From Macrostomum lignano (lineage: Eukaryota), in assembly GCA_002269645.1 (NCBI GenBank), contig NIVC01004586.1:1-41312 (forward strand): 41,312 nt of DNA, given 5' to 3'. Below the pieces are notes generated by a model. It was given only the letters and a program-made list of their open reading frames with translations, made no database searches and was not told the DNA's origin. Below are positions 1,221 to 35,892 of this stretch, piece by piece. Positions within the stretch are counted from its first letter, which is position 1. Every line of letters starts with the position of its first letter. Made by a program: the position numbers and the translations under genes.

Positions 1221-2097
1221 CTAAACTGGCAATAAATCTTCCAGACAGGACATCACAGACAGGACATCACAGGCGTGACTCGCCAGCATCGAGGCCCACA
1301 GTGTCACCTCGCCATTCACCGTGAAATCGTCGCCTTGTGACTGGTCGCCTTCACGGTCTTTAGACGAGCACAAACCAGCAAGCCAAGCGTCACTCGATGG
1401 TCGACAGCCTTCATGGCTACTACTAGCAGTAGCATCAGCAGCATTCGCTGATTGTTTAACAATTAGTTTAGAAGCCAGCTCGGGAACTGTGCCAGCTGAG
1501 TTGGGCAGCAAATTCAGCTCTTCAATAACCATCCAGATGTCCCACTTAGCAACTAAAGAAGCCGTGACTAAATCCGATCGGACAGAATCGCCAAAGTAGG
1601 CAATCTTTCTGGATTGAGTTTTATCATCACATTGTCCAAGAAATTTCAATTCAAATTCTTCCGCACAACCGCTGATGTAAGCTTTACCCCGACCGAATGG
1701 AAGGCGTTCGAAGCTTTCGTAGCTGCTGTAGTAACTAGCGAGCTTGAATAATACGATTTGGACTTTTCATAAAAAAGTTCGGCTTCCCAGCCTCCAACAG
1801 GCAGGCGTCGAATAAATCCGGCCAGTCCTGACCCAGAATGTGCTCAAGATGTCTGGCAGCGAACTGAGCCTCAGAGGATGATAATAAAAAGACATAAATG
1901 CCGCGTTGGCGAAGCTGTTTGAGCAGCACTCGAACTCCGGAGGTCACCGGGCACAGGTAAGCGCTGGGATTAGCTAATACATATTTAAAATAAGCGCCAT
2001 CATCTGAGTAGACGTGAAGCAAAGCTGAGTAGCAATCCTGCCAAAGGCTGCTGCAGTCAGTCAGTGGGGTGGTTCGATTCTCTTCTGCCAAGTCCAC
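1221..2097 (-). CDS. NT5DC1: NT5DC1-type HAD 5'-nucleotidase, exon 2, with an apparent +1 frameshift at about 1738-1770
   Basis: Acceptor caacag|GTG GAC at 2098/2097. Contains LLSSS (motif II), GKPNFF (motif III Lys) and, in the shifted frame, YISGCAEEF, IAYFGDSVRSD (motif IV), WDIWMVIEEL and LWASMLAS. These are colinear with human NT5DC1 as recalled (KPGFF, YSQGNA, VVYFGDSMHSD, WETVLILEEL). Confidence 0.88.
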
Positions 2098-2152
2098 CTG
2101 TTGATGAAGCCAACTTGCTTTTAGTAGAATATCAGCACGTATATGTAGCATC

Positions 2153-2185
2153 ATACTGTACTGCACTGTACTGTACTGTACTGCA
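2153..2185. repeat. Short (ACTGT)n microsatellite in the NT5DC1 intron
   Basis: actgtactgcactgtactgtactgtactgca. Confidence 0.8.
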
Positions 2186-2287
2186 ACCCACCTGGCCATT
2201 TTCATTTTTTTGTGCTCACAAAGCCCCAAATGAATGTGGCTGCGCAACCAGAGGTGGTCCTGGAGCCCCCCTCCTTCCCCAACGCAC

Positions 2288-2716
2288 CAATTTAGCGAAT
2301 ATCAAACTGCCAGGCAAGTCGTAGTGAGTATCCTGAAATCGATAGCGACCATCTCGTTCGTGTCGATAGCCGCTATTGAGAACGGCTTGAGCAAACGGCG
2401 GCCGACCGTCTGGCGGATAAGCCAATTTAGCGTCAAACTGTTTGCTGCCGTGACAAACTCTCAATGCTGCACCTGTGGGCGACATCAAAAGCAGATTGCC
2501 GCCTATTTTGTCTAAAATAGCGGCCCTACTCATTAAGCCGCACTCAACTGGCGATGACCAGTCAAGACTGCGCAGATGATTGGGATAGCCGCGATGCTTA
2601 ACTAAATAGTCTGCCAATTCAACGTAAGCTAGACTGACCAGATTGCGCAACTGATAACGGCCCAGCGTGAGATCGATGTCAAAACCGACTGCGTCGTAGT
2701 CAAACAGACGCTCCAT
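2288..2716 (-). CDS. NT5DC1: NT5DC1-type HAD 5'-nucleotidase, exon 1
   Basis: ATG at 2716. DAVGFDIDLTLGRY is HAD motif I (DxDxT). GNLLLM, RVCHGSK and HYDLPGSLIFAKL match the NT5DC1 pattern. Phase-0 donor TTG|GTGCGT at 2287; the 190-bp intron joins AKL|VD in frame. Confidence 0.92.
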
Positions 2717-2844
2717 ATTTATTTGGTGTTGTCTGACTAACCGACTAAACTGACGGAATCGGTGCTGAAAATAATAATAATAAATCGGAGTGCTAGTTGG
2801 TATCGAGATGAGATGAATATTTGAAATTTGTCATGATTCATGAC

Positions 2845-3622
2845 TTAGACTCTTAAGTGTTGGAATCATTAGTCTTAGTCTTAGTCTTAAATTCTTATTC
2901 GCAGACTCTTATTATTAGACTCTCAGTCTTAGACCCTTAGTCTTAGACCCAGTCTTATTTGTGTTTCAACAAACTTTCATCAGTCTTAGTCTAAGATTCT
3001 TAGTCTTAGACTCTTAGTCTTAGATTATTAGTCTTAGACTCTTAGTCTTAGATTCTTAGTCTTAGACTCTTAGTCTTAGATTCTTAGTCTTAGACTCTTA
3101 GTCTTACATTCTTAGTCTTATACCCTTAGTCTAAGATTCTTAGTCTTCGATTATTAGTCTTAGATTATTAGTCTTAGATTATTAGTCTTAGATTATTAGT
3201 CTTAGATTATTAGTCTTAGATTCTTAGTCTAAGATTCTTAGTCTTAGATTCTTAGTCTTAGACTCTTAGTCTTACATTCTTAGTCTTATACCCTTAGTCT
3301 AAGATTCTTAGTCTTCGATTATTAGTCTTAGATTATTAGTCTTAGATTATTAGTCTTAGATTATTAGTCTTAGATTCTTAGTCTTAGATTCTTAGTCTAA
3401 GATTCTTAGTCATAGATTCTTAGTCTTAGACTCTTAGTCTAAGATTCTTAGTCTTAGATTCTTAGTCTTAGACTCTTAGTCTTAGATTATTAGTCTCAGA
3501 CTCTTAGTCTTAGATTATTAGTCTTAGATTATTAGTCTTAGATTATTAGTCTTAGATTATTAGTCTTAGATTCTTAGTCTTAGATTCTTAGTCTTATACC
3601 CTTAGTCTTAGATTCTTAGTCT
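2845..3622. repeat. 14-bp minisatellite (TTAGTCTTAGATTC/ATTA and variants) between the divergent NT5DC1 and ZNRF3-like starts
   Basis: Directly visible tandem units built from two related 7-mers. Confidence 0.95.
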
Positions 3623-4222: not shown

Positions 4223-4456
4223 ATGGCAAAATCACCTGGCCTGCTATCAATTACAATCGCGCTGCTTGTGGTCAGCAGCGAACTAAAGATCACAGCACAG
4301 GGCTGGCAGTGGACTAGAGCCAATATTAGCGTGAGTATTCAGCAATCAGCTTTGCCACACGGCAAACAAGGCCAAGATAGGATTGTTCGACTAGCCGGAT
4401 TTTATGCTCCAAAGACGTCGAATGAAGCGTTCAACAGCAGTGGAAATCTGGTCAAG
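4223..4456 (+). CDS. ZNRF3/RNF43-like E3 ligase, exon 1 (signal peptide and start of PA ectodomain)
   Basis: ATG at 4223; hydrophobic LLSITIALLVVSS. RANISVSI..RLAGFY..SGNLVK parallels ZNRF3 AFVEVVL..LTGRF..EGEIVQ. Phase-0 donor AAG|GTGAGC at 4457. Confidence 0.72.
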
Positions 4457-4621
4457 GTGAGCCAAAAACGAGCTACAGGGTAAAAATGAAGATCGTGAGC
4501 TCTTTTTAAAAATAGATCGAAATATTTCTTATTCTGACAAATCGTTTCTTAAAAAGCTTAAGACTTCTGATCAAAAGTCGCATTAAATTAAAATGCCCCT
4601 GCCGAACAGTTATAAGGAACT

Positions 4622-6440
4622 AACTTGACAATTGTCAGTTAGTCTGTAAGATACCTGACCAAGAGTTGACAATTGTCAGTTAGTCTGTAAGATACCTGAC
4701 CAAGAGTTGACAATTGTCAGTTAGTCTGTAAGATATCTGACCAACAGTTGAAAATTGTCAGTTAGTCTGTAAGATACCTGACCAAGAGTTGACAATTGTC
4801 AGTTAGTCTGTAAGATATCTGACCAACAGTTGAAAATTGTCAGTTAGTCTGTAAGATATCTGACCAACAGTTGAAAATTGTCAGTTAGTCTGTAAGATAT
4901 CTGACCAACAGTTGAAAATTGTCAGTTAGTCTGTAAGATACCTGACCAAGAGTTGACAATTGTCAGTTAGTCGGTAAGATATCTGACCAACAGTTGACAA
5001 TTGTCAGTTAGTCGGTAAGATATCTGACCAACAGTTGACAATTGTCAGTTAGTCTGTAAGATACCTGACCAAGAGTTGACAATTGTCAGTTAGTCGGTAA
5101 GATATCTGACAAACAGTTGAAAATTGTCAGTTAGTCTGTAAGATATCTGACCAACAGTTGACAATTGTCAGTTAGTCGGTAAGATATCTGACAAACAGTT
5201 GAAAATTGTCAGTTAGTCTGTAAGATACCTGTCCAAGAGTTGACAATTGTCAGTTAGTCTGTAAGATACCTGACCAAGAGTTAACAATTGTCAGTTCGTC
5301 TGTAAGATACCTGACCAAGAGTTGACAATTGTCAGTTAGTCTGTAAGATATCTGACCAACAGTTGACAATTGTCAGTTAGTCGGTAAGATATCTGACCAA
5401 CAGTTGACAATTGTCAGTTAGTCGGTAAGATACCTGTCCAAGAGTTGACAATTGTCAGTTAGTCTGTAAGATACCTGACCAAGAGTTAACAATTGTCAGT
5501 TCGTCTGTAAGATACCTGACCAAGAGTTGACAATTGTCAGTTAGTCTGTAAGATACCTGACCAACAGTTGACGATTGTCAGTTAGTCTGTAAGATATCTG
5601 ACCAACAGTTGACAATTGTCAGTTAGTCGGTAAGATATCTGACAAACAGTTGAAAATTGTCAGTTAGTCTGTAAGATACCTGACCAAGAGTTAACAATTG
5701 TCAGTTCGTCTGTAAGATATCTGACCAACAGTTGACAATTGTCAGTTAGTCGGTAAGATACCTGACCAAGAGTTAACAATTGTCAGTTCGTCTGTAAGAT
5801 ATCTGACCAACAGTTGACAATTGTCAGTTAGTCGGTAAGATATCTGACAAACAGTTGAAAATTGTCAGTTAGTCTGTAAGATACCTGACCAAGAGTTGAC
5901 GATTGTCAGTTAGTCTGTAAGATATCTGACCAAGAGTTGACAATTGTCAGTTAGTCGGTAAGATATCTGACAAACAGTTGAAAATTGTCAGTTAGTCTGT
6001 AAGATACCTGACCAAGAGTTGACAATTGTCAGTTAGTCGGTAAGATATCTGACAAACAGTTGAAACTTGTCAGTTAGTCTGTAAGATACCTGACCAAGAG
6101 TTAACAATTGTCAGTTCGTCTGTAAGATATCTGACCAACAGTTGACAATTGTCAGTTAGTCTGTAAGATATCTGACCAACAGTTGACAATTGTCAGTTAG
6201 TCTGTAAGATATCTGACCAACAGTTGACAATTGTCAGTTAGTCTGTAAGATATCTTACCAACAGTTTACAATTGTCAGTTAGTCTGTAAGATATCTGACA
6301 AACAGTTGAAAATTGTCAGTTAGTCTGTAAGATACCTGACCAAGAGTTGACAATTGTCAGTTAGTCTGTAAGATACCTGACCAAGAGTTAACAATTGTCA
6401 GTTCGTCTGTAAGATATCTGACCAACAGTTGACAATCATC
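4622..6440. repeat. 41-bp satellite (GTTGACAATTGTCAGTTAGTCTGTAAGATACCTGACCAAGA), about 44 copies, in intron 1 of the ZNRF3-like gene
   Basis: Period measured from TTGAC at 4625 and 4666. Head-to-tail units with no unique spacers. Confidence 0.97.
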
Positions 6441-7394
6441 AGTTAAATTGTATTTGTAAGATAATAATTTATCGGGCACTGAGCTGACATGCTCACTTGT
6501 TAAAGTTGTTAGTATGTATCGAAATCAATAAAACACTGCAGAGGAGTGGCAGAAAGTCAGTTAATAATGCCTTGTGCTAACGATAGTAGGGAATAGAGCA
6601 ATATATAATGAATTGAACAGAACAATGGGTTTTGGAAAAGGAAAAATCAGATAGAATTTAATGGCATTGACGAAAATTCCCCTAAAAATTCTAAAAAGCC
6701 CCTATTAACTATCCTATAAGTCACTAATCAGTCACATTTATACCAAACCAAACCTGAAGTCTAACTGGGAAGAGATTTAAGGTAAAAAAATCAATACAAC
6801 AAAGGAGAATATTTCCAACCGGATCGACACCTGATACCTGAAAAGCAGCTTCCTATGAGGCAATGATTCTTTTAATAAGTGCTAGATTGATTGGATATGC
6901 AGTAAAGCATGCTATGCAGGATGCACAAGCTAGGAGTATAGAAAATCCAAGTACAATAAGTATCTTAAGCGTTGTTATCCACACAAATCGCTAAGATCGT
7001 TTCTGTTTACCAAAACTAGCATTGTGAAATATTCCATCTGTTTTTTTTCAGCTATTTCGGTATCAATAAATAAACCTTGGAACAAACTTTCAATAAATCA
7101 TCTTAAGGCTACTAGAACGGCGACTGTTCCTCAAACAGCAGCAGTGATAAACAGTTTTATAATTTTTATTAAAAAATTTTAATCAAACTAGGCAGCCGGT
7201 GACAAAGCAGGAAACGGGGGTAAGTTTTTATAGGAAATTAAAGACGGAAATTTGAATTACGAATCAAATTTTTGTAGCAAAGCAACAGACCCATGGGTTT
7301 CAGTGCTTCGTGTAGCAGGGTCGGTGATAGAGACAAGGCACGTGACGAGTAGGTAGGATCGACTTATGCACTATATAGCGAAAACAAGTATTGC

Positions 7395-7885
7395 TTTTGT
7401 CAGCCTAACTGAGAATAAAGCCATCCAAAGTGAGAATCCTGCCTACGCTGACTGCGAAGGGCCTGGCTGCGTGCAGCCTTAGTCTATGGGCCATAGACAA
7501 TAAAGGACAAGCAAAGTGATAAAAAGCCATCCAATGTGAGAATCGATTGGTCTATGCGTCGTATTGTTTTATTTTTATACCTTCTGAGCCATATGACTAG
7601 CCAATAGCTTGAACGGAATAACGGAAACAGGAACACACTGGATAATGTCTTTTTAAAACTTTGCTTGTCCTTTATAGTCTATGGCTCATAGACTAGGCTG
7701 GACGCAGCTAGGCCCTTCGTATTCAGCGTAGGCAGGATTCTCACATTGGATGGCTTTTTATCACTTTGCTTATCCTTTATAGTCTATGGCCCATAGACTA
7801 AGGCTGCACGCAGCCAGGCCCTTCGCAGTCAGCGTAGGCAGGATTCTCACTTTGGATGGCTTTATTCTCAGTTAGGCTGACAAAA
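7395..7885. mobile_element. Foldback/MITE-like element with 150-bp inverted arms (7395-7544 and 7736-7885) and an extra internal partial copy
   Basis: The arms are reverse complements with about 2 mismatches. Internal hairpin AGTCTATGG-N-CCATAGAC(T/A). 7659-7735 is a further diverged tandem copy of the right arm. Confidence 0.8.
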
Positions 7886-9429
7886 CCTATACTAAGCGAA
7901 CGTGAAATAAAGAAAAAATGGAAAGAGAATTGACAGCCTGACAGAACACGGAGCGCACAGGGCGAATTCGTATTCTCAAGCATCAACTACTTTTTTCTTA
8001 GAAATCAGCATTAACCACAGTATAGTCTGCAGCCTCCCGTTAGGCTACAGTATACAGCATGTCTGCTTTAAATTCTACTTAGCAAAAACACCAACGATGC
8101 AGGCAGATATAAATATATGAAGCATTGTTTTCAGTGCTTAAACAGGCTAGATAGGAAGGAAACAGACGGAATCAAAATGAGGCGAGAGAGTGAGTAATTG
8201 ACAGAGAAATTGAGAGAGAGATGGAGATAGACACAGGAAAGAGGGAAAGTTAGTTATAGCTGTCAATCATTCGATAAGCACCCTTGCCTCCAGAACACGG
8301 CCTCTATACATGGCCTGCCTGACTCAGCTAAAGAGACAAGCCTCTCAAACTGTTTCTTAGATAGTTGGAATCCATGTGATTGCGTCACTGCTTCTCCATT
8401 TTTCACAGCTACAGTCTCGTCAGCAGCAGAATCGATTATTAGGAAACTTATAACAGAGTCGACTTCAATTTCTACTCAACAATAAAAAACCCACCAGACG
8501 GCCATACTTATTGTGGGCCCCCTCCTCGGGGGGCGGGAGTAGCTACCTGTCAATCCTAGGAGAGAATGAGAGCACTGGGATTTCTGTTCACACTTGGCGT
8601 CAAGGCCCGACCCGCCCCAGAGAAGGAATTGAGAGTCCATTTTGAGTAAAAAGCGATGACGCATGACGACGCTGACTAGCAGTAGCAAAGTAGTTTACTC
8701 GTATTATTAAAGTTTTCAGCCAGCCCAGTGTTGGTGCTTAAAAATTTCAAACCCGCGCTACACTTAAATTCTACTCAGGTATAACAACGCGAGCAGAGCT
8801 GGGAGCGAGAGAAACCGGGAGAAAAATTAGGAAGAAAAAGAGAAAGTGACGCACACCACAGCGCTGGCTGTCTGTCTCTCACCCAATACAGCACAAGTGC
8901 TGGAGCAAGGTCGACTCCGCCCACTAGAATAGCCCTTCCTCCCGTGCAGCCCCAGCAGTTTTCGCTCTCAAGTCTTCTTCCCTGAAACCACCTTCCCCAC
9001 GTTTGCAGATTCACAATAGAATTGCCACACACACGCACACTCTTCACACCCAGGTGGCAGAAGCTCAACTCTCTTCCCCCTTTTCAATCCGTTCTGTCTG
9101 TCTCTCTGCCCCCCTTCCCCTCATTATTCCTCGCTTTCGCCTCCTCCGGTCATAACTTGTCAATCTCGCTTTAATAAGGCTATACCCACTCACCCTGTCT
9201 GCAACAAAATCTATATTTGGAGCTCTGGCTGCAGCCTCAATTAAGGTATTTTATGCAACCAAAACAGTCTAGTTATTTATCAGGTCATCCCGAAAAATTT
9301 CTGCAATTTTTCTTTGGCTTTAATATTAATATTAATAATTGATTACACCTGCGCGAATGCGCAGATGTGCAACCGACAGCTCATCTGAAGGTTGCGTACG
9401 GCTGTTCAGCCCAAGGACTGGGGAGTCGG

Positions 9430-9607
9430 CCACACACACCCTCAATTACCCCAGATAATGCTGACACCCATTTTACAGCTTGGGTGAACTGAAGCAATGC
9501 AGAGTTAATTATCTTGCGTAAGGACACAATTTGTTCTGAGTAGATCGAGAATCGAAACCCCGACCTTTCAGCCGAGTCCGGCGCTCTAGTCTCTAGGCTA
9601 CAATCCC
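9430..9607 (-). mobile_element. tRNA-derived SINE with CORE-like central domain (copy 1)
   Basis: The reverse complement aligns by eye with 34476-34644: degenerate B box GTTTCGATTCT, then TGCATTGCTTCAGTTCACCCA(A)GCTGTAAAATGGGTG and CTGGGGTAATTGAGGG. Confidence 0.8.
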
Positions 9608-10856
9608 ATCTTTGGCTTTGATAGCTCAAAAACTTTGGTTGAGTTTCACTTTATCTCTTTAGACATTTCTCAGTATCTGCTAGAAAAAGTTGCGACCTTT
9701 TTGAGTGAATTATATTGCATATTTTAATAGGCTTATAAACCTGCAGATAAGAATTCGAGCTCAGAAATGTTGGAAAAATTCTGAAATCAACAGTGCATAT
9801 ACTATAGCTTGTAAGAGAAAATAGCTTCTAGTTCTGCCATACAAATAGCTATTCATCGTTAAACTTCATCCTCTCCCACTAAGTTCATCTTTTTTGTTTA
9901 AAAACCAGGCAAAGGCAAATAATCGATACTCAACAGAGTAAAACAGGGAGCTGCATTAAACACCAGAGCAGCGCAATTAGTATAGAGAAATAGGAAGGAA
10001 ATATGCCAGGTATGGAGATGCGCGGTGAAATGACGATACACACACTAACGGGACGGGTTGTCTGTTTGAGATATAGTAAAAGTGAAAACGATATTCCCTG
10101 TCCGGTAAAATGGATGCATGGATAAACGGAACTAGCCGCATGGAAAGCTGAACAAGAAAAGTTTAGTCAATCTCTTTCCTGTTGACTTCATCCTGCTACA
10201 CTACACGCACTGTCAACTCAACTCCTATTGATTATAGCTAAGCTGTCTTCATTAGCAACAAAAGCGGTGCACCAGACTGCCCCATTTGATAGCTCAGTTG
10301 CCACGCCCTATCGATCCAAATCTGGAAATAGGCTCTGTAGTAGCTTATACCAACTAGTGAATTTTCATTTCGATTCTGCAAAATTTCATTCTATAAGAAC
10401 ATGAAATGCTAAGTAATTATGAAAGTAAATTAGGCCGATTAAATAAATGTCTACACAGAATTGAAACAAGGACAAATTTTCGAAGAAAGTTTCGGCTTTA
10501 GGAAAAATTAAAATTTGTAAATTTAATAAATGCCTGATGTTTACAAAAATTAAAGAAACAATAAAATTGGATGTCATATCAAAAGACGAGCATTTGATTC
10601 TGCTTTTAAAAGCAATCCAAATTTTGTACCGAGAAATTTCGGTATTGTATTTTTCGTACAGTGCTAGCCCTCAAGTATTTTTCCAGGAATTTAAGTTTTA
10701 TTTACGTTCTTAATTACTTGAAACCTACGTTCATGCCCAAGCCTCGTGACGTTGTTCTAAGCTTAGAACCTTGGTGACCACACATTTTTAAAATTAGTTT
10801 TGAAAGTTGCAAACTTGTAAAATACTTAATAAGTAGCCGAAAAAACCTTCTAACAG

Positions 10857-11060
10857 ATATTATCGCTGGGTCTGTGTCGCGAAGACACCGATCAACTGCA
10901 CCACGAGGCATGGATTGGCCTAGTCTATCCCAAAGAATCCGATTGGTTTGCGCCAAGCACCTGCAATCGACTGGCTGAGCAGACTCGGAGGGCGGCTAAA
11001 CGAGGCGCCGTTGGATTAGTGTTCGACGTGCGCAACGCTCACGGACACCTGCGAGAACAG
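10857..11060 (+). CDS. ZNRF3/RNF43-like E3 ligase, exon 2 (PA ectodomain core)
   Basis: Acceptor ctaacag| and donor CAG|GTAGAC; 204 nt, phase 0-0. Translates ILSLGLCREDTDQLHHEAWIGLVYPKESDWFAPSTCNRLAEQTRRAAKRGAVGLVFDVRNAHGHLREQ, matching ZNRF3 HPLGLC..YGWVGVV..C..KRAVQRGATAVIFDV. Not in the ORF track. Confidence 0.88.
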
Positions 11061-11152
11061 GTAGACTATATTTAGAATTCTGGTATGATGATATGCTACT
11101 TGAATTAGGATATCAGCATTAAACAAGGTCTTCTGAATTATTTATTCCACAG

Positions 11153-11430
11153 CTAATGGAAGCTGGCAAAGACCAAGAAGGCTTCAACATCACGGTGGCA
11201 ATAGTTGACTCAAGAGATGCAACAAATTTAGACCTGTTGGAGTCGCTGGATTTAGCAAAATACCACGCCAAGGTTGACATTCGACCAGCTTCAAGCGTCA
11301 AAAGTCGGTACAGTGGTCGCACTGGGAACCGAGGTCCGAAACCACTCGGGTGACATTCTACGCGGAGATTGCGGCCTTCCTACTGTTCTTTCTGGCCTTC
11401 TGCATCATCGGAATCGGGCTGCTAGTTAAG
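11153..11430 (+). CDS. ZNRF3/RNF43-like E3 ligase, exon 3 (end of PA domain and TM helix), apparent 1-nt deletion
   Basis: Acceptor ccacag|CTA ATG; LMEAGKDQEGFNITVAIVDSRDATNL..AKVDI. The -1 frame then gives RVTFYAEIAAFLLFFLAFCIIGIGLLVK ending at donor AAG|GTAGGA (11431). The exon is 278 nt, one short of a phase 0-0 exon. Confidence 0.82.
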
Positions 11431-11678
11431 GTAGGAGAAGCTTTATAATAATATTTGGCTCTAGTTGAATAAAACTTCAACAGACAGACGACAATTACAA
11501 AACACAATAGCACTAGTAAACACTCGTCTACACTTCAAACTTTGTCTTAATGCAGTAGACGTTGTTGACGACTGAACTTTAATAGCACGACTATTTTTGC
11601 CACGTATGTGGCTCATGATTGTTTTAGCCAAAAAGTTTATGTCCACTGTATATTGCCGGTAGCCATTTCTTTCTTCAG

Positions 11679-12151
11679 TTCTACTCCTATCGGGAAACCA
11701 ACAACACAGCTGGGACGCTGTTACTAAGGAACCCCAAGCTGGCAGGATCAGCAGCGGACCAGCATCTGACCCAGCATCTTCGCCGAGAATGTTGCTCAAC
11801 CTGCTTGGAGCCGTTTCAAAACACCAACGAGCCACACCGTACGCTGCCCTGCGGACACGGATTTCATTTGCAATGCCTCAACAATTGGCTAGCTGCCAAT
11901 CAGACCTGTCCAATATGCAACACAATATTCTGGGCGAACCGCCACTTGAAGAAGACAATACAATGGAAACCATGACAACCACGGCTACGGCAACCACTGC
12001 GGTTGCGATAGAAACGGCTGTATCCGACGAAGTCTATTCGTCTAACTATAGCGTACTATGCGACGACGGGCCAACAAACATTTCTAGCAGCAAATTTCTG
12101 TCAAACATAACAACAGGAAAAACGAATCCGTCACGAGAGACAACGCTTTGA
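11679..12151 (+). CDS. ZNRF3/RNF43-like E3 ligase, exon 4 (RING-H2 and S/T-rich tail), apparent 1-nt deletion at 11919-11920
   Basis: Acceptor tttctttcttcag|TTC. The frame from 11679 gives CSTCLEPFQNTNEPHRTLPCGHGFHLQCLNNWLAANQTCPIC, a complete C3H2C3 RING-H2. HNILG follows in the -1 frame (ZNRF3 has CPHCRHNII). Stop at 12151, or at 11975 if unshifted. Confidence 0.88.
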
Positions 12152-14004
12152 TCATTGAGCAAGTTTTCTAGCATACTAACCTTGTATGCTCCAGTTTTTT
12201 CAAGACTTCATCGAATCAAAACTCAACCGTGATCGGTTCAATAGAACCATATGTTCAACATTGTAAATATGGCGTCAACTAATATTATTGTCATAAGATT
12301 TATTGATTAGTTATTTGCACGAACTATAACGGGTGGCCCAAGCACAGGGTTACACTTTAACTACCACTACCAATACCTGAAAGATATTTTACCTTAGCGC
12401 AGGGACGAAGTCCTCCCAACCACAACAATTTTTGTTTTCTATAAAGTAGACTTAAGAAATTGTGGGGGCGGTTGATAGAGTTTTGGCCATAGACAGCTGG
12501 TTGCATCAACTACTTTGGTGCTTTCCCTGCCGCTCAATTAGCAGGTGTTAATGCGTCAGTGGCTATTATTTAACGGGAACGGGACAAGCAGGCTAATGTA
12601 CAATTCAAGCCAGTGCGAAACCAGAGTTATACAAGTTTATCAATTCAAACATACTAAAGAAATCAATGGAATGTTATAATCTGGCTTTGAGTGTTTTTTC
12701 ATTTTAATTATATAAGCACATCATTACAAACGCGATATTCTATTAAAATCGATCTATTTAAATTGTCCTATCACCTTCGTTCTTAATGCTGATAACTACG
12801 GCAAATTGTAAATATGACTCTCCCATAGTTGAAATCATCTATTCTATAATTTTGTTCTACAACATGCTTATTCCAGGACGTGTATTGAAGAATAAATTAA
12901 TGCATGCCTATACTACTTAAACATTAAGGGCTCTATCGATTCAAGATTTACCTTAATTTCTAAGCACACTTAGCTCAACTTTTAAGAAAAACAATGAAAA
13001 ATGAAGTAGTCAAGAATAGCGACAAGTGAAAAAGATGTCATCAAAAAATGAAATAATCTTTGCTCGCATTTCAAACAGCTGAGATCTTTTTTTATACAAT
13101 TTCCATTTTTTAATAAAAATTCAACAAAGTCAAACAATCAGCATGCAAAGGGTGACAGTTATACTTGGTATACTGGAGATGGCCCTTAAAACCGAATAAA
13201 AACCAAACCAAACCCGCAAACACAGAACACAAAAGACAACAAATTTATTGAGTAAAAAGGCCAACACAAAATACGATTGGTGTCTGGAAAGTCCGCACAC
13301 CTCTCGTAAAATTCTAAGAAACACATATATTAATCTAAGCCAAACACGTGAAAACGCGCCGTACTGATCAACAATAAACAACAAAATTGTTTATTACAAG
13401 AAAGTGAGAGCTTCAACCATATTAAAACAAAGTTCAACGAATGAAATGTAACGAATACGCAATATACAATAAATAGATAGAATGTTTCGGTTTTACAAGC
13501 CAATAATGTTGAATAAATACACACGAATAGAACACAGAAATGCTTAGTAAAAGAAATACATTTTATTTGTGCTGGTAGCGCTCCACCCAAATCTGTCAGC
13601 TCCAGACGGATCTAAAAATGACAAAGTAATAAAAGAAAAAAAGAAAAAGAAAAAAAGCACTTTCAGCCTACTGTCAGTAAAACAAAGAATTGTTCCGTTT
13701 AACTGTTTTTAAAAAGCTGCTAATGAAATAGCTTTAGATAAGGTTTTTTAACTGAAAACTAAAGGATTTGAAGGATTCTGAATTAAAGTAAAGACAAAAG
13801 GGCAAGGAATTGCGAAAGAATTAGTAGTCACACTATAATTCTATAATTTTGAACGAAATTAAAAAAGAGGGGTTTAGAGAAATGAGAACGAGGAAGAGAG
13901 GTGTCCTTGACAGCGCGACCGGCGATTAAATGGAGCAAACAAAAAAGCCAATGAATGAGGAAAAGAAGCACAGCAATGCAGCTGAGGTGCCGAAAGGACA
14001 CATA

Positions 14005-15195
14005 AGATACAGTGAGACACACATGAGATACAGGTGACACACACGAGATACAGGTGACACACACAGGAGATACAGGTGACACACACGAGATACAGGTGAC
14101 ACACACACAGGAGATACAGGTGATACACACACAGGAGATACAGGTGACACACACGAGATACAGGTGACACACACACAGGAGATACAGGTGATACACACAC
14201 AGGAGATACAGATGACACACACACAGGAGATACAGGTGACACACACACAGGAGATACAGGTGATACACACACAGGAGATACAGGTGACACACACAGGAGA
14301 TACAGGTGACACACACACAGGAGATACAGGTGATACACACGAGATACAGGTGACACACACACAGGAGATACAGGTGATACACACACAGGAGATACAGGTG
14401 ACACACACACAGGAGATACAGGTGACACACACACAGGAGATACAGGTGACACACACACAGGAGATACAGGTGACACACACACAGGAGATACAGGTGATAC
14501 ACACACAGGAGATACAGGTGACACACACAGGAGATACAGGTGACACACACACAGGAGATACAGGTGATACACACACAGGAGATACAGGTGACACACACAG
14601 GAGATACAGGTGACACACACACAGGAGATACAGGTGATACACACACAGGAGATACAGGTGACACACACACAGGAGATACAGGTGACACACACACAGGAGA
14701 TACAGGTGATACACACACAGGAGATACAGGTGACACACACACAGGAGATACAGGTGACACACACACAGGAGATACAGGTGACACACACACAGGAGATACA
14801 GGTGATACACACACAGGAGATACAGGTGACACACACAGGAGATACAGGTGACACACACACAGGAGATACAGGTGATACACACACAGGAGATATAATGACA
14901 CACACAGGACACACACAGACACACACAGGAGATATAATGACACACACAGGAGATACAGGTGACACACACACAGGAGATACAGGTGACACACACACAGGAG
15001 ATACAGGTGATACACACACAGGAGATATAATGACACACACAGGACACACACAGACACACACAGGAGATATAATGACACACACAGGAGATACAGGTGACAC
15101 ACACACAGGAGATACACACAGGAGATACAGGTGACACACACACAGGAGATACAGGTGACACACACAAGAGATACAGCTGTGACACAGGTGACACA
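14005..15195. repeat. 18-22-bp minisatellite (ACACACAC)AGGAGATACAGGTG with variable CA tract
   Basis: Visible tandem units. ORFs 13828-15249 and 14164-15325 are repeat translations. Confidence 0.96.
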
Positions 15196-15829: not shown

Positions 15830-15958
15830 GGACAGACAGACAAACAGCAGACAGACAGGAAGGCAGGCAGACAGACAGACAGACAGACAGAGACAGACAC
15901 TAAGACAGACAGACAGACAGACAGGAAGACAGACAGACAGACAGACAGACAGGAAGGC

Positions 15959-16001
<43 letters not shown>

Positions 16002-16005
16002 AGGC

Positions 16006-16050
<45 letters not shown>

Positions 16051-16125
16051 CAGACAGACACACAGACAGACAGACAGACAGACAGACACAGACAGACACA
16101 CAGACAGACAGGAAGGCAGACAGAC
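15830..16125. repeat. (GACA)n microsatellite interrupted by GGAAGGCA
   Basis: Direct. Confidence 0.96.
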
Positions 16126-16364: not shown

Positions 16365-17863
16365 TCAAGGTCTGGTGGACAGCGGCACAATGGGCCTCGG
16401 GGGCGGCCTAGCGGCCAATTGCCGGTCACTGTTGCATTGGACACCGCTAGCGGCATTGCCAACAGCGGCCTCGCTAACTACCCCGTTTAACTCTGTGTCC
16501 AAATATTCCAAGCACTCTAATCTAGTATCGTCTATTCGCCTGATATTGTTGAGGCGATTAGTTGCCATGGCAACCATAGCTTCGGCGGCCTCGGCTTCGG
16601 CTCGGCGACGCTTATCAACGCATGAAGGCAAACTTTGAGAAGCTTCAATGTCGGAATGACTACGTTTTCTGCTGCTACTAGAAGCAACGGTGCTAGACTG
16701 TTGCTGCGATTCCTGATGACACTGGAAATCCACAGCGCTGTTATAAGCTGCCTGCAAAGCTCTAGCCAGCTGTTGATAGGCATTAGCCAACGGCTCCGGG
16801 ACAGTGAATTTCCTATCCGACATTGTCGTGTCAAAGACATCGAAATTGTCAATAACTGGACTTGCGGAGCAATCGCAGGAATTCAAATAACTTTCAGCTA
16901 TCACTGGCGGATCTAAAGTCCTTGTTTCTTGATCGGAGGAGTCTTTGTTAAGATCGTCAATAGTTAACACGTCAACAACTTCGAGACAGTCAAAGTCTAG
17001 ACTATCTGCATCGCTATTATTGTCGTCAGAATGCTTGTCTGACTGTTCAGCAATCTGTTGAAGCTGCTGATGCTGTTGCTGATGCGGATGCAGCTCAGAC
17101 AATGATGAGGTCGCAGGAGTAGCCGGTCCAAAATGCTGACTACTAATAGTAGGATTAGACATCGGATTATCCGAGCTAGACAATAAACTTAATGGAGCTT
17201 CGCCCAGGTCGTCGCCATTCGGCAGGTCGGCCGCACCGCTGGAAAAGTCCGAGCCCTGATCGAATTTAAACAGCGAATCAGCCGCAGCGGCAGCCGCCTC
17301 GGTGCCAACCTCCGAGCTGGCATCCGCCGTTAACAGATAATCTTCTATCGACAATTCTTCCCTAACACCGCCATCGCCTTCGTCTTCGCTAATAGGCTCA
17401 AATACCGGAGTCTGCAATGCGGAGCTTCTTTCCTCATCAATTTTATTGACCTCCCTCTCTACCCTAGCTTCTTGCCGATGGTGATTGTTAACCGTGGACG
17501 CCTGCTGCGAATGACTGGCATGACAGAAGCCGTAGAACAGGCTTGGGTACAGGCTGTCATAATGAGTTACAGCATCAGCATCCGCCTGACCTGGCGATGA
17601 CAACAGCTGGCCCAGATCCACACTGAGCGCATCGCCAAGAAGGTCTGGTGAGTATAAAGTTGGCGGCTGTGACAGTAACTGTTGCTGCTGCTGTTGTTGT
17701 GTCTGCTGCTGATGCTCCTGAGATGAAAATTCCATACCGTCAAAGTAGCGAGCCAACGCTAATCTAACGTAATCGCGCATTACGCCTACCCGATGCGGGG
17801 AGCTGCGCACCGGACAGCTGCGGGCCCAGCGGCGACTGCGGCGCCAAAGAGCTCCAACTGCTT
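16365..17863 (-). CDS. Large exon of a putative nuclear/transcription factor: end of the NRF1-like domain, acidic and poly-Q low-complexity region, basic NLS-like motifs; may extend to 16159 via a frameshift
   Basis: Acceptor ttccccttatcccacag| at 17864, phase 1. Open for about 500 codons: (E)AVGALWRRSRRWARSCPVRSSPHRVGVMRDYVRLALARYFD..., poly-Q, RKRSHS, KRRR. Confidence 0.8.
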
Positions 17864-18734: not shown

Positions 18735-19730
18735 TGGCCTACACACTGGACAGGAGTGACACACAGGGTGAAGCACTGGACAGGAGTGACACACAGGGTG
18801 AAGCACTGGACAGGAGTGACACACAGGGTAAAAGCACTGGACAGGAGTGACACACAGGGTGAAGCACTGGACAGGAGTGACACACAGGGTGAAGCACTGG
18901 ACAGGAGTGACACACAGGGTGAAGCACTGGACAGGAGTGACACACAGGGTAAGCACTGACAGGAGTGACACACAGGGTGAAGCACTGGACAGGAGTGACA
19001 CACAGGGTGAAGCACTGGACAGGAGTGACACACAGGGTGAAAGCACTGGACAGGAGTGACACACAGGGTAAAATCACTGATCAGGAGTGACCCACAGGGT
19101 AAAATCACTGACAGGAGTGACACACAGGGTGAAAGCACTGGACAGGAGTGACACACAGGGTAAAAGCACTGGACAGGAGTGACACACAATGTGAAAGCAC
19201 TGGACAGGAGTGACACACAGGGTGAAAGCACTGGACAGGAGTGACCCACAGGGTGAAAGCACTGGACAGGAGTGACACACAGGGTAAAAGCACTGGACAG
19301 GAGTGACACACAGTGTGAAAGCACTGGACAGGAGTGACACACAGGGTGAAAGCACTGGACAGGAGTGACCCACAGGGTGAAAGCACTGGACAGGAGTGAC
19401 ACACAGGGTAAAATCACTGATCAGGAGTGACCCACAGGGTAAAATCACTGATCAGGAGTGACCCACAGGGTGAAAGCACTGGACAGGAGTGACCCACAGG
19501 GTGAAATCACTGATCAGGAGTGACCCACAGGGTAAAATCACTGATCAGGAGTGACCCACAGGGTGAAAGCACTGGACAGGAGTGACCCACAGGGTAAAAT
19601 CACTGATCAGGAGTGACCCACAGGGTAAAATCACTAGACAGGAGTGACTCACAGTGTAAAAATACTGAATAGGAGTGACGAGTGACTCACAGGGGAAAAC
19701 CACTGCTCAGGAGTGACCCACAGGGTAAGA
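18735..19730. repeat. 30-31-bp minisatellite (CACACAGGGTGAAGCACTGGACAGGAGTGA)
   Basis: Period 30 at 18758/18788, with 31-bp variants to the right. ORFs 18546-19448 are repeat translations. Confidence 0.96.
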
Positions 19731-20384
19731 GCACAGGATACCTTTCATAACCTCTGTATGTTTATTCAGAAAAAAACCGACCAAAGGATAAAACTAAAAG
19801 TGCGGTGCTCTTAATAAAATACTTGCACATGTAGAATACAGATTGCAAGGTGCAAAGCTTTGCTAACTACTTGTGCACATAATAACGTTATGTAATACAT
19901 CTGCATGCTAGTATGCTGTCATATCATTGCAAAAAATGTTCTGCAATAAATTACAACACTTATCATGTAGGTACAACGTAATAATATAATAATAATAACT
20001 GCTTACTGCCAAAGGTTTAGAATCCAAATATGAGTCTGCAGTGCTGGAATATAATATTCAACTTATATTACATTACTTTTAATATATGGAGAATATTTAT
20101 AGGTACACACATAGGTACACACAGGGGTAACAAGTGTACTAGTAATTAAACAATGCATTTTATCATACACTTTTTTGTGTGTTTATCCAGATCCGCCATC
20201 TACTTTCTCCGGTTCTATGATGCCTACCTAATTATTTCTTGCTAGCTATTCAGCTAGCTAACAGGCGCGCGTGTAACTAAGCCAAATAGTGCAATATCAA
20301 GTAAATAGACGATACCTACTGACTGAATGGCATTAGTTAAGGGGCAGGGGCGTGATACAGACCTGACTGACTGGAGATTATACT

Positions 20385-20945
20385 CAGCTAAGAGACTAGA
20401 TTTTAAACAGCTATGAGACTAAACTATTGTTAGCTATGAGACTAGATAATCAGCGATGAGACTAGATTATAATCAACTATGATACTAGACTATAATCAGC
20501 TATGAGACTAGATTATAATCAGCTATGAGACTAGATTATAATCAGCTATGAGACTAGATTATAATCAGCTATGAGACTAGATTATAAACAGCTATGAGAC
20601 TAGATTATAATCAGCTATGAGACTAGATTATAATCAGCTATGAGACTAGATTATAAACAGCTATGAGACTAGATTATAATCAGCTATGAGACTAGATTTT
20701 AAACAGCTATGAGACTAGATTATAATCAGCTGAGACTAGATTATAAACAGCTATGAGGCTAGATTATAATCAACTATGAGACTAGATTATAAACAGCTAT
20801 GAGACTAGATTATAATCAGCTATGAGACTAGATTATAAACAGCTATGAGACTAGATTACAATCAGCTATGAGGCTAGATTATAATCAACTATGAGACTAG
20901 ATTACAATCAGCTATGAGGCTAGATTATAATCAACTATGAGACTA
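20385..20945. repeat. 23-bp minisatellite (CTAGATTATAATCAGCTATGAGA)
   Basis: CTAG at 20462, 20485 and 20508 gives period 23. Confidence 0.95.
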
Positions 20946-21024
20946 GATCACCGTCTTTTATTACGGTTAGGACAGCAAAACAGTTTTAGTAATACTACTG
21001 AAATTACTGTAAAATCTTACTCAC

Positions 21025-22234: not shown

Positions 22235-23090
22235 AAAATCTCAAATCTGTGAGTTTCAGGTATCAAAATATCACCACTGCGAGATTCAGGTATCATAGTC
22301 TCACCTCTGCGAGATTCAGGTATCAAAGTCTCACCTCTTCGAGATTCAGGTATCAAAGTCTCACCTCTGCGAGACTCAGGTATCAAAGTCTCACCTCTGC
22401 GAGATTCAGGTATCAAAGTCTCACCTCTGCGAGACTCAGGTATCATAGTCTCACCTCTGCGAGATTCAGGTATCAAAATCTCACTTCTGCGAGACTCATG
22501 TATCAAAGTCTCACCTCTGCGAGACTCAGGTATCATAGTCTCACCTCTGCGAGATTCAGGTATCAAAGTCTCACCTCTGCCAGACTCAGGTATCATAGTC
22601 TCACCTCTGCGAGATTCAGGTATCAAAATCTCACTTCTGCGAGATTCAGGTATCGAAATCTCACCACTGCGAGACTCAGGTATCAAAGTCTCACCTCTGC
22701 GAGATTCAGGTATCGAAATCTCACCACTGCGAGACTCAGGTATCAAAGTCTCACCTCTGCGAGATTCAGGTATCAAAATCTCACCTCTTCGAGATTCAGG
22801 TATCAAAGTCTCACTTCTGTGAGACTCAGGTAACAAAGTCTCACTTCTGCGAGATTCAGGTATCAAAGTCTCACCTCTGCGAGATTCAGGTATCAAAGTC
22901 TCACCTCTGCGAGATTCAGGTATCGAAATCTCAGCACTGCGAGATTCAGGTATCGAAATCTCACTTCTGCGACATTTAGACATCAAAATCTTACCCTTCA
23001 AAGATTTGGGGATCAAAATCTCACCCCTTAGAGATTTGGGTAGTAAATTCTTACCCCTTATATATTCTGGTATCAAAATCTTAACCCATT
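22235..23090. repeat. 30-bp minisatellite (GAGATTCAGGTATCAAAGTCTCACCTCTGC), degenerating at both ends
   Basis: Direct. ORFs 22210..23076 and 22225..22833 are 10-aa repeat translations. Confidence 0.95.
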
Positions 23091-23589: not shown

Positions 23590-24290
23590 TGACAGTGAAT
23601 ATCCTGACAGTGAATATCTTGAGTGAATATACTTACAGTGAATTAGCCTGACAGTGAGTATCCTGACAGTGAATTAGCCTGACAGTGAGTATCCTGACAG
23701 TGAATTAGCCTGACAGTGAGTATCCTGACAGTGAATTAGCCTGACAGTGAGTATCCTGCAGTGAATTAGCCTGAGAGTGAATAGCCTGACAGTGAATATC
23801 TTGAGTGAATATCCTGACAGTAAATATCCTGACAGTGAATATCCTGACAGTGAATATTCTGACAGTGAATATCCTGAGTGAATATCCTGATTGAATATCC
23901 TGACAGTGAATATCTTGAGTGAATATCCTTACAGTGAATTAGCCTGACAGTGAATATCTTGAGTGAATATCCTTACAGTTAATAGCCTGACAGTTAATAG
24001 CTTGACAGTGAATAGCCTGACAGTGAATATCCTGACAGTAAATATCCTGACAGTGAATATCCTGACAGTGAATATTCTGACAGTGAATATCCTGAGTGAA
24101 TATCCTGATTGAATATCCTGACAGTGAATATCTTGAGTGAATATCCTTACAGTGAATTAGCCTGACAGTGAATATCTTGAGTGAATATCCTTACAGTTAA
24201 TAGCCTGACAGTTAATAGCTTGACAGTGAATAGCCTGACAGTGAATAGCCTGACAGTGAATAGCCTGACAGTGAATATCCTGACAGCCAA
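23590..24290. repeat. 11-16-bp minisatellite (CTGACAGTGAATATC) with a 218-bp higher-order duplication
   Basis: The diagnostic variant TAAATATCC occurs at 23821 and 24039, and the variant order is repeated. Confidence 0.93.
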
Positions 24291-30736: not shown

Positions 30737-31333
30737 TTGTCAACTCTTTTCTACAATGGCTATCCTAAGAACTTGGTGATGAAAATTGTCAACTCTTTTC
30801 TCAATGACAAACTGACTGAACCTAATCGGATGAAAGTTCGTGATTCCACCTCTGAATGTCCCTTGATCACTTTGCCTTACTTTGGTGTTTGTTCTATAGA
30901 GTTTAAAAAGAAGTTAGAAAAGCTGCTCCGTAAAGACTTAAACACTCAAATCCGTGTTGTGTTTCGCACCGAAAAGATTGCTAAGTTTGTCTGCAAGTTG
31001 AAATCCAGTGTTCCACGTCCTCTCGCGGCTGGTGTCGTGTATAAATTTGTTTGCTCTGAGGACCAGAGCATCTCCTACATAGGAAAAACTAAACGACACT
31101 TATACACGAGGGTCAGAGAGCACTGGCTAAAAAACTCTGCTATTAACGAACACCTGCTAACCTGCAATTCTTGTTGTGAGGCTGAACCACACGAAATGAT
31201 TAAGGCTATTGATTTTTGTAATAGAGATCACATGCTCTGCCTATTAGAAGCCCTGTACATTAAGACCAAACAGCCCACGTTAAATAACCAACTTGCGATG
31301 GGTGGGGCTAGCCGTCAACTCAGAATTTTTTAG
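30737..31333 (+). CDS. PLE ORF remnant: RT thumb/linker and GIY-YIG endonuclease
   Basis: NGYPKNLV, ITLPYFG, GVVYKFVC..SYIGKTKRHLYTRVREH, SAINEHL, LEALYIKTKQPTLNNQ are PLE GIY-YIG hallmarks. Intact to stop; the N-terminus is created by the truncation junction. Confidence 0.93.
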   Translation: MSTLFYNGYPKNLVMKIVNSFLNDKLTEPNRMKVRDSTSECPLITLPYFGVCSIEFKKKLEKLLRKDLNTQIRVVFRTEKIAKFVCKLKSSVPRPLAAGVVYKFVCSEDQSISYIGKTKRHLYTRVREHWLKNSAINEHLLTCNSCCEAEPHEMIKAIDFCNRDHMLCLLEALYIKTKQPTLNNQLAMGGASRQLRIF

Positions 31334-33682: not shown

Positions 33683-34112
33683 ATGATGGCGCTCCATAGA
33701 ATTTTCCCGATCCTGAGCAGCCTGATCTGCGTCACTCTTTGTCGGCAGTTTCAGACCACGGATCTCGGCTTCTTTGTTGACTACACGAATGGTGTGAGAG
33801 ATATATGCAAACTGAAAAACCTGGGCCTGACACGGGTTGGCCGTTACACCATACGGCCTGACGGTACTGATGTAAGTTACGTTTTCGTGTCGAGTTGGCA
33901 AATGACTCATGAGCTGTGCGGCACCATCTGCTCACTTGGCGGCTTCAAGTTTATGACGCTTCAAGGCGAAAACTGGTGCAGCTGCGGCAACTCCTACGGC
34001 TCGCAGAGCGCGGCTCCTGACTGGGAATGCTGGGACACCTGCGCCGGTAACAGGACTCAAAACTGTGGTGGTCCTTACCGAAATCGAGTGCTAAAATTGA
34101 CATATGCTGGCA
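33683..34112 (+). CDS. Secreted WSC-PAN protein, exon 1 (signal peptide and WSC domain)
   Basis: MMALHRIFPILSSLICVTLC signal peptide. GFFVD..RD..MTHELCGTIC..WCSCGNSYG..EC..TCAGNRTQNCGGPYRNRV is a WSC domain. Phase-1 donor GGCA|GTAAGT at 34113. Confidence 0.88.
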
Positions 34113-34475
34113 GTAAGTTTACAGGAATTTATTTCTGGGTAGCTACCGAGCATAATCCTAACAGTAGGATTAGTAGTTTCTTAGAAATAAGCATGTCGTA
34201 TACTCTCTATAGAAATCGGATTTTCTCATGACCAATTTTGTCTATGGTGAAAGCCCATTCACCGCTCTAGAGCGTACTAAACAAGGCGTACTAGGTACTA
34301 AGCGTACTAAGCACTAAACAACTAAACAAGTTGTTCATGGTGATTACAGGAAGCTATAGTTAAAGGCTAAGAGATTGAGCTTTAGTGTACAGGCAGAGCT
34401 CCGATGATATGACGAGTTGAAAATCAGACTTGCAACTATTTATCAATTATTTTCAAGCCCTTTCAAGTAGGTAGA

Positions 34476-35410: not shown

Positions 35411-35892
35411 ATTTAAGAGAAGATAGGAGATTAGAGAGAGAGCGCTGAGAAGAATCACAAACCTTGAGCAAGCCAGTTTGCAACTCGCATGATGAAATTT
35501 CAAATTTTAGCGGGCCGGAGTTTGCCGACCCCTGTATCTGCCTACCTTTACTTACGACGTATTGAGATTACTTTATTCGGACAAATTAAATATACGCTAG
35601 CAAAGAAAGAGCAGTACTGTGAAATCGCACTTGACGATGTCTGCACTCGGCTGTCTTCCTCGTGCATGTAATTGTTCTTTAAAATGGAAATATGACAAAC
35701 TACTAAAAATCATACACGCTTTGTGAAATGTTATAACTCAAGCTACATGTACAAGCGGTTCAGTTTATTTTACTGATAAATTATATACCTCTGACCCTTC
35801 AGCACTGTATAAATTAACAAGTGAGACTATACCAATTCCTATATTATTTTGACACTCCTGATGGAGTAAAACTCCATTTGCCACTCCTCTAG

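Follow-up and report, generated by a model that had tools for sequence, protein, structure and literature searches.

The question raised by this locus is whether the interval 4223-12151 on the forward strand of contig NIVC01004586.1 (assembly GCA_002269645.1) encodes a membrane-bound ubiquitin ligase of the ZNRF3/RNF43/PLR-1 family, as had been proposed in a sequence-only reading. In the following, the window is the whole stretch of DNA analysed, i.e. positions 1 to 41,312 of the contig. The host, supposed in that reading to be a regenerating flatworm, is indeed one, Macrostomum lignano. The results obtained make it probable, on balance, that the interval holds a four-exon gene of this species, or a duplicate of it that was disabled very recently, for a ZNRF3-type membrane ligase, whose proposed action on Frizzled-class receptors is more tentative.

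The four exons were spliced by script on the plus strand. All introns are in phase 0, with GT/AG borders, and the resulting model, together with the two positions at which its frame is interrupted, is the following:

4223-4456, plus strand: exon 1, 234 nt, aa 1-78; ATG, signal-like N-terminus and first ectodomain strands; donor GTGAGC.
4457-10856, plus strand: intron 1, 6400 nt, phase 0, GTGAGC...CAG; repeat-rich.
10857-11060, plus strand: exon 2, 204 nt, aa 79-146; core of the ZNRF3-type ectodomain.
11061-11152, plus strand: intron 2, 92 nt, phase 0, GTAGAC...CACAG; UniRef protein A0A1I8JI27 is colinear over the junction.
11153-11430, plus strand: exon 3, 278 nt, aa 147-239; second half of the ectodomain, stalk and transmembrane helix.
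11431-11678, plus strand: intron 3, 248 nt, phase 0, GTAGGA...TTCAG; A0A1I8JI27 is colinear over the junction.
11679-12151, plus strand: exon 4, 473 nt, aa 240-396 and stop; linker, RING-H2 and tail; TGA at 12149-12151.
11336-11337, plus strand: frame break 1, CC where A0A1I8JI27 has a His codon (GNRG-H-ETTR).
11922-11923, plus strand: frame break 2, AC where A0A1I8JI27 has a His codon (CPICN-H-NILG).

With both breaks bridged, the conceptual product is 396 aa long. The order originally read from the sequence, a signal peptide followed by a PA ectodomain, a transmembrane (TM) helix, a RING-H2 domain and a Ser/Thr-rich tail, was recovered in all its elements; the exons had been joined as if they were continuous, but they do not lie in one frame, because of the two 1-nt breaks. 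It had also been stated that the list of open reading frames (ORFs) contains none of the PA core, the TM helix and the RING. Exon 2 and the TM helix are in fact found in no listed ORF, but an ORF of 56 aa contains the RING, and one of 65 aa the latter half of the ectodomain.

A word-indexed search found, as sole relatives of the predicted protein, two UniRef entries from M. lignano, A0A1I8JI27 (308 aa) and A0A1I8HUU9 (315 aa), each entered as 'RING-type domain-containing protein'. Both are truncated at the N-terminus, starting inside exon 2, and both already carry the annotation of the Pfam domain PF18212. The gene, presented at first as a hidden one, is therefore already modelled, with the exception of exon 1, which is absent from both entries and is contained in no protein of the searched collection.

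The need for an exon of this kind follows from exon 2: a stop lies one codon 5' of its acceptor and it contains no ATG, which makes an upstream exon necessary. When exon 1 is included, the score of the ectodomain on a local profile, built from 12 ZNRF3-like proteins, rises from 39.2 to 51.7 bits, the alignment starting at residue 30, and pairwise alignments to ZNRF3-like proteins start at residues 47-58, within exon 1. When the whole window was scanned in six frames with the same homemade profile, these exons alone were matched, and its N-terminal part found no second counterpart. Exon 1 is thus proposed as a new element of the model, predicted by the logic of the sequence rather than from transcripts. 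It would provide the part missing from both UniProt models, i.e. the signal peptide and further N-terminal residues, 88 in all.

Two repeated structures were observed within intron 1. A 41-bp minisatellite (consensus TTGACAATTGTCAGTTAGTCTGTAAGATATCTGACCAACAG), present in 44 copies with 92% matches at 4625-6445, occupies 1.8 kb of the intron. An inverted repeat has arms at 7387-7544 and 7736-7893, which are 158 nt long, 97% complementary and 191 nt apart, with shorter arms nested; it looks like a foldback or a miniature inverted-repeat transposable element. A tRNA-derived short interspersed element had been considered at 9300-9700, and was dropped because Rfam and tRNA scans gave no match, either there or over the whole window.

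The assignment to the family is carried by the ectodomain. Both Cys residues of the ZNRF3 disulphide (LGLC..PSTC), WIGLV and RGAVGLVFDV, singled out in the sequence-only reading, were all found in exon 2: LGLC at aa 82-85, WIGLV at 97-101, PSTC at 111-114 and RGAVGLVFDV at 127-136. Cys85 of LGLC (10875-10877) and Cys114 of PSTC (10962-10964) occupy alignment columns with a conservation of 90% or more. In ZNRF3 the disulphide joins the beta3-beta4 and beta4-alphaA loops, and Cys85 and Cys114 correspond to the residues described there (PMC3905715); the bond in the Macrostomum protein is a predicted one.

The Pfam family ZNRF_3_ecto (PF18212) matches aa 82-174 with 34.5 bits, above its cut-off of 26.2 (E=2.2e-8), while no match to the canonical PA domain, PF02225, was found in Pfam at E<=1. 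For comparison, canonical ZNRF3/RNF43-like proteins score 126-150 bits on PF18212, one divergent member 48, and two RNF215-like proteins 24.3 and 20.8, below the cut-off. In a phmmer search of PDB the top match was full-length human ZNRF3 (5e-16), the ZNRF3 ectodomain chains being matched at 1e-8 to 2e-6 and those of RNF43 at 5e-5 to 2e-3. Exon 2 alone scores 35.4 bits on the ZNRF3-like profile. The 51.7 bits reached by the complete ectodomain compare with 8.5 bits on a local profile of the Goliath/RNF13/RNF215/protist group, and an RNF215-like local profile gave no match to the Macrostomum ectodomain. BLOSUM62 per ectodomain column is 0.80 for ZNRF3-like, 0.38 for RNF215-like and 0.43 for Goliath/RNF13 proteins.

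An exhaustive HMMER search, in which the M. lignano UniRef protein was compared with 1.84 billion representatives, returned 11,734 matches, mostly to the RING only. The top non-self match (206 bits) consists of eight tandem RING repeats, and was discarded as no relative. Those matches which span ectodomain, TM helix and RING, and which were looked up by name, are all ZNRF3-like proteins:

Fish: ZNRF3-like match, database name ZNRF3-like.
Saccoglossus, Haliotis, Argopecten: ZNRF3-like matches, database name 'ZNRF3-like'.
Ciona: ZNRF3-like match, database name zinc finger (RING)-10.
Tubulanus, Pinctada, Owenia, Antedon, Candidula: ZNRF3-like matches, unnamed in the database.

In the opposite direction, a profile search started from the ZNRF3-like alignment returned the Macrostomum cluster only. 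BLASTP against the protein from the nemertean Tubulanus gave a single colinear alignment over aa 56-324, with 29% identity and E=2e-28. A structural model was produced with AlphaFold2 (AF2) from an alignment of 13 sequences; its mean predicted local distance difference test score is 66, which corresponds to low to moderate confidence. In a Foldseek search with this model, ZNRF3 ectodomains occupied ranks 1-28 (E 3e-7 to 8e-5), RNF43 was found at 4e-4 and the PA domain of GRAIL at rank 39 (9e-3). The interval is therefore very likely to be a gene for a ZNRF3-type ligase with the PA-TM-RING layout. Its product is a new, very divergent member of a well-known family, held so far in UniProt as unnamed, N-truncated fragments.

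The remaining parts of the protein are arranged around this domain. The N-terminus, encoded at 4223-4294, is hydrophobic and signal-peptide-like (MAKSPGLLSITIALLVVSS), with its hydrophobic stretch at aa 7-19. A single strong hydrophobic segment, FYAEIAAFLLFFLAFCIIGIGLLV, is encoded at 11356-11427 (aa 215-238), with a Kyte-Doolittle maximum of 2.9 at aa 219-237; in the window copy the reading frame leads to it only if frame break 1 is bridged. Three N-x-S/T sequons are present, all within the ectodomain. A type I topology is predicted from these features, with an N-terminal signal peptide and with ectodomain and RING separated by one TM helix.

A linker of 39 residues leads from the TM helix to the RING-H2, which is encoded at 11793-11918, matches zf-RING_2 with E=2e-11 and contains all 8 zinc ligands (C278-x2-C281...C297-x-H299-x2-H302-x2-C305...C316-x2-C319), with LNNWL in place of VDPWL. 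The tail of 77 residues is acidic, rich in Thr and Ser and colinear with A0A1I8JI27. It ends in -ETTL (12140-12148), which we take, as a match of pattern alone, to fit the class I PDZ-ligand form (S/T-x-hydrophobic). Since the long tail of ZNRF3-type proteins is missing, this candidate PDZ ligand could matter for the recruitment of partners.

A number of observations weigh against the reading of the locus as a gene for a Wnt-receptor ligase of the ZNRF3/RNF43 type. Exons 1-4 do not make up one ORF, two 1-nt gaps being present in 1.19 kb of coding sequence. The ectodomain frame reaches a TGA at 11351-11353, ahead of the TM helix, whose frame is a different one; the RING frame stops, after WKP, at the TGA at 11973-11975, and the tail is in a different frame. 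Read literally, the locus encodes a secreted ectodomain of 212 aa, with neither TM helix nor RING. The ectodomain is 21% identical to those of ZNRF3-like proteins, 19% to RNF215-like and 18% to Goliath/RNF13 ones, and the fold match is partly circular, since the alignment used for AF2 was made of ZNRF3-like proteins.

On the cytoplasmic side, the RING is 40-47% identical to those of all PA-TM-RING groups alike. The linker motif LAxxALxKMETRK(F/Y), a version of which occurs in 11/11 ZNRF3-like proteins and in the single RNF215-like protein aligned, followed there by 20-35 residues before the RING, is reduced to a weak remnant, KLAGSAADQHLTQHLRR, directly abutting the RING; the sequence-only reading had correctly remarked that no obvious match to ALEKMETRKF is present. 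The RING starts with CSTC, having Thr two positions after the first Cys, where CAIC or CAVC are usual: in 61 RINGs of 42 related proteins this position is occupied by I in 44, V in 14, M in 2 and H in 1. In RING ligases the residue at this position is a principal contact with the ubiquitin-conjugating enzyme (E2), so that activity or choice of E2 may differ. The same Thr is found in A0A1I8JI27, and is therefore no defect peculiar to the window copy. The tail of 400-600 residues found in the retrieved ZNRF3-like proteins is missing, and the alignments to these proteins all stop about 5-10 residues past the RING. In the vertebrate proteins, the long Ser-rich tail serves Dishevelled-dependent targeting, and regulation dependent on Dishevelled and CK1.

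A flatworm precedent is also wanting. The supplementary tables of the Schmidtea RING/U-box catalogue list ten 'GOLIATH'-class genes, but no gene of any class with ZNRF3 or RNF43 as its best human match, so that these planarian tables offer none. The open literature yielded no work on a ZNRF3/RNF43 homologue of flatworms, but only a KEGG label, 'Znrf3', in a Stenostomum transcriptome.

The nature of the frame breaks can be judged from the UniRef proteins, which are colinear with the window through both sites with one extra His at each; a single base is therefore missing from the window at each of 11336/7 and 11922/3. The colinearity, with exactly one added residue per site, excluded short introns at the breaks, and likewise an AAAA run near 11313 as the site of break 1. 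Over 306 aligned residues, 11 substitutions distinguish the window protein from A0A1I8JI27 (96% identity), and the window protein is one residue shorter at each break. A0A1I8HUU9 equals A0A1I8JI27 except for the last 33 residues, where the tail runs in a shifted frame (…NISKQQISVKHNNRKNESVTRDDALIIEQVF; about 12085-12175 in the window), i.e. a small indel separates the two UniRef copies. This indel brings to light one synonymous difference relative to the window, in the codons for ETTL (ACA vs ACG). Intact copies are present in the species, and for the window copy the two gaps are either assembly errors or the marks of a non-functional duplicate. The published data leave room for each: the M. 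lignano line DV1 contains large duplicated blocks at least 95% identical, so that spare copies would be free to decay, and the published assemblies are error-rich, with 32-64% error-free bases by REAPR, which makes indel artefacts in this gene plausible (PMC5730564).

That the window copy is a genuine, recently disabled duplicate, in which both deletions are real and from which no ligase but at most the secreted ectodomain could be made, has to be taken seriously, although its likelihood is put somewhat under even. Two independent breaks in so short a coding sequence, neither of them in a long homopolymer, are suggestive when other long ORFs of the window are unbroken, e.g. the one of 1446 nt at 16365-17810; redundancy of the duplicated blocks and the 11 amino-acid differences, which fit relaxed constraint, agree with decay. 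Set against this, the correct frame continues open past the two breaks, for 195 and 76 codons, at 96% identity to the intact copy and with no stop or bigger lesion, the UniRef copies, identical elsewhere, are separated from each other by a frameshift in the tail, and the REAPR figures favour artefacts. The more radical view, that chance ORF fragments were joined by eye, could appeal to the short exons, to the 6.4-kb intron 1 and to frames which join only if two missing bases are assumed. Its probability is negligible: exons 2-4 are colinear, at 96% identity, with two M. lignano proteins that were annotated independently, the domains are found in family order with E-values of 1e-8 to 1e-17, and this colinearity, together with the six-frame profile scan, led to its rejection. 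The two single-base discrepancies are flagged here for annotators.

The position within the PA-TM-RING ligases was evaluated with neighbour-joining (NJ) trees, built from Kimura or gamma distances on full-length, ectodomain or RING alignments with 100-300 bootstraps and including no PLR-1 sequence. No clustering with RNF13, RNF128 or RNF130, the outcome named in advance as contrary to the proposed family, was seen: in 76-83% of bootstraps, Goliath, RNF13 and protist PA proteins are separated from a group formed by ZNRF3-like proteins, RNF215-like proteins and the Macrostomum protein. Within this group the Macrostomum protein forms a long basal branch, which is to be added to the points against listed above. 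It joins ZNRF3-like proteins to the exclusion of RNF215 in 4-8% of bootstraps only, it joins RNF215-like proteins in 11-14% and it falls outside both in 59-64%. The proposed membership of the ZNRF3/RNF43/PLR-1 family thus stands for the type of the ectodomain, as judged from Pfam, PDB, profiles and Foldseek; the trees leave strict orthology to ZNRF3/RNF43/PLR-1 unproven, as against a basal or RNF215-side position.

A lineage-specific ligase, branching before or beside ZNRF3/RNF43 and RNF215 and acting on other membrane cargo, with a role in endosomal sorting like Goliath, Godzilla or RNF13 rather than on Wnt receptors, would account for the basal position, for a RING and linker no nearer to ZNRF3 than to other groups and for the lack of a ZNRF3-type cytoplasmic tail; RNF215-like proteins show, moreover, that a ZNRF3-related ectodomain is not limited to ligases of Wnt receptors. 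This is regarded as unlikely, though not to be neglected. It is the ectodomain that has been implicated in recognizing partners, and its likeness to ZNRF3 is specific by the Pfam cut-off, unlike that of RNF215, by PDB search, by profiles and by the motifs LGLC, W-G-V and FDV, and a basal position is expected from long-branch attraction in so fast-evolving a sequence. RNF215 itself, a short PA-TM-RING protein of about 375 aa and thus of comparable overall length, is a real rival because the ectodomains of RNF215-like proteins are distantly related to that of ZNRF3; these proteins nest beside the ZNRF3-like ones in the trees, and BLASTP aligns the linker remnant best with an RNF215-like protein of scallop. 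A flatworm orthologue of RNF215 is nevertheless held to be very improbable, because no ectodomain similarity is detected by BLASTP, by phmmer or by a two-sequence profile that does find ZNRF3-like ectodomains, because the Cys-containing insert between ectodomain and TM helix of both RNF215-like proteins is absent, and because only the Macrostomum protein exceeds the Pfam cut-off. Its tail of 77 aa is also at variance with RNF215-like proteins, which end 10-11 residues after the RING.

For the ZNRF3-type ligase favoured here, a function can be outlined by analogy. ZNRF3 and RNF43 multi-ubiquitinate the loops of Frizzled and drive endocytosis of the receptor (reviewed in PMC3937510; PMC10686798), and R-spondin has been reported from deuterostomes only (PMC3937510). 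As in the case of ZNRF3, RNF43 and PLR-1, the Macrostomum ligase would sit in the plasma or endosomal membrane, where its RING would recruit an E2 and ubiquitinate cytoplasmic loops of Frizzled-class Wnt receptors. The receptors would be internalised and degraded, and sensitivity to Wnt would be lowered independently of R-spondin. As the long Dishevelled-targeting tail is absent, the choice of target would rest on the ectodomain and TM helix or on the short tail. Down-regulation of Frizzled or of other Wnt receptors is advanced as a tentative function, whose chances are judged to fall a little short of even. The stronger proposal, that a stripped-down ligase of 396 aa, with neither METRKF linker nor long tail nor R-spondin, may still clear Wnt receptors by means of its ectodomain and TM helix or of -ETTL, is considered rather improbable.

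In regenerating flatworms, the choice between head and tail identity is determined mainly by Wnt/beta-catenin signalling. A scan for the TCF/LEF motif CTTTGATS yielded 4 sites against 4.4 expected, with no sign of Wnt feedback. Should the stronger proposal be true, the ligase would restrain, by feedback, the Wnt gradient through which head-tail polarity is set in regenerating flatworms, and a regulator at the level of the receptor would be added to flatworm axis patterning. It would also represent a minimal working core of a tumour-suppressor family, in which ectodomain, TM helix and RING suffice without the long regulatory tail. If an intact copy acts on Frizzled, it would offer a handle on Wnt receptor turnover in a flatworm in which transgenesis is possible.

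Further genes, ORFs and repeats were noticed in the rest of the window. A 5'-nucleotidase-family gene (PF05761) is in head-to-head orientation to the ligase gene, at a distance of about 1.5 kb from the ligase ATG, with a 14-bp minisatellite in between. Its three ORF pieces, examined as a yardstick for assembly indels, appear to be split by an intron and not by frameshifts; a homologue search for this gene gave no match. A GIY-YIG nuclease domain, of the type carried by Penelope-like retroelements, is encoded by an ORF which may be the remnant of a mobile element, and an uninterrupted ORF of 481 aa is possibly a real single-exon gene. The features observed are:

1221-2716, minus strand: 5'-nucleotidase-family gene, three ORF pieces matching profile positions 13-138, 130-256 and 298-333.
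2844-3622: 14-bp minisatellite.
16365-17810, minus strand: uninterrupted ORF of 481 aa with poly-Q and acidic stretches, no Pfam match.
30737-31333, plus strand: ORF of 198 aa, GIY-YIG nuclease domain, E=2.4e-7.
33605-34231, plus strand: ORF of 208 aa, WSC carbohydrate-binding domain, E=5.6e-12.
188-994, 14017-15186, 15831-16125 and 18744-19738: examples, together with 2844-3622, of the arrays among the 45 Tandem Repeats Finder rows of the window.
20375-20948, 22235-23036, 23590-24286 and 35878-37244: further minisatellite arrays.

Many of the long ORFs listed for the window are translated repeats. Simple and tandem repeats make up 15% of the M. lignano genome (PMC5730564), and the very high density of minisatellites in the window fits this figure.

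Among the named systems, Goliath, Godzilla, RNF13, RNF128 (GRAIL) and RNF130 share with the Macrostomum protein the general layout of PA-like ectodomain, TM helix and RING-H2, with the RING identity given above. The ectodomain of Goliath, RNF13 and GRAIL is a canonical PA domain (PF02225), whereas the Macrostomum protein has no match to it, and pairwise E-values against Goliath/RNF13-type proteins are about 1. RNF215 is closer, being a short PA-TM-RING protein with an ectodomain distantly related to that of ZNRF3 (47-48 bits on the ZNRF3-like profile) and a place near the ZNRF3-like proteins in NJ trees. RNF215-like proteins are characterized by a Cys-rich insert before the TM helix, an ALxxMxTRKW linker and a CAICL...VDPWL RING, in all of which they differ from the Macrostomum protein.

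The closest likeness is to ZNRF3, RNF43 and the invertebrate ZNRF3-like proteins, which provide the best sequence, profile and fold matches. The order of signal peptide, ZNRF3-type ectodomain, TM helix and RING-H2 is shared with them, as are the Cys pair, LGLC, W(I/V)G(L/V)V, RGA..(V/I)FD(V/I) and, after the RING, NI(L/I)xE (compare CPLCNFNILGDPP in Ciona). They differ in size, ZNRF3-like proteins being 700-950 aa long vs the 396 aa of the Macrostomum protein, and the R-spondin partner of the vertebrate proteins is not expected for a protostome one (PMC3937510). The PLR-1 protein of C. elegans, an invertebrate relative of RNF43/ZNRF3 compared here by its description in the literature and not by sequence, lowers the surface levels of Frizzled, Ror and Ryk in the worm without R-spondin or LGR4/5 (PMC3937510; PMC10686798). 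For this reason it suggests itself as the functional analogue of such a protostome protein and, should the proposed function be true, regulation of the PLR-1 style, independent of R-spondin, would reach into Spiralia.

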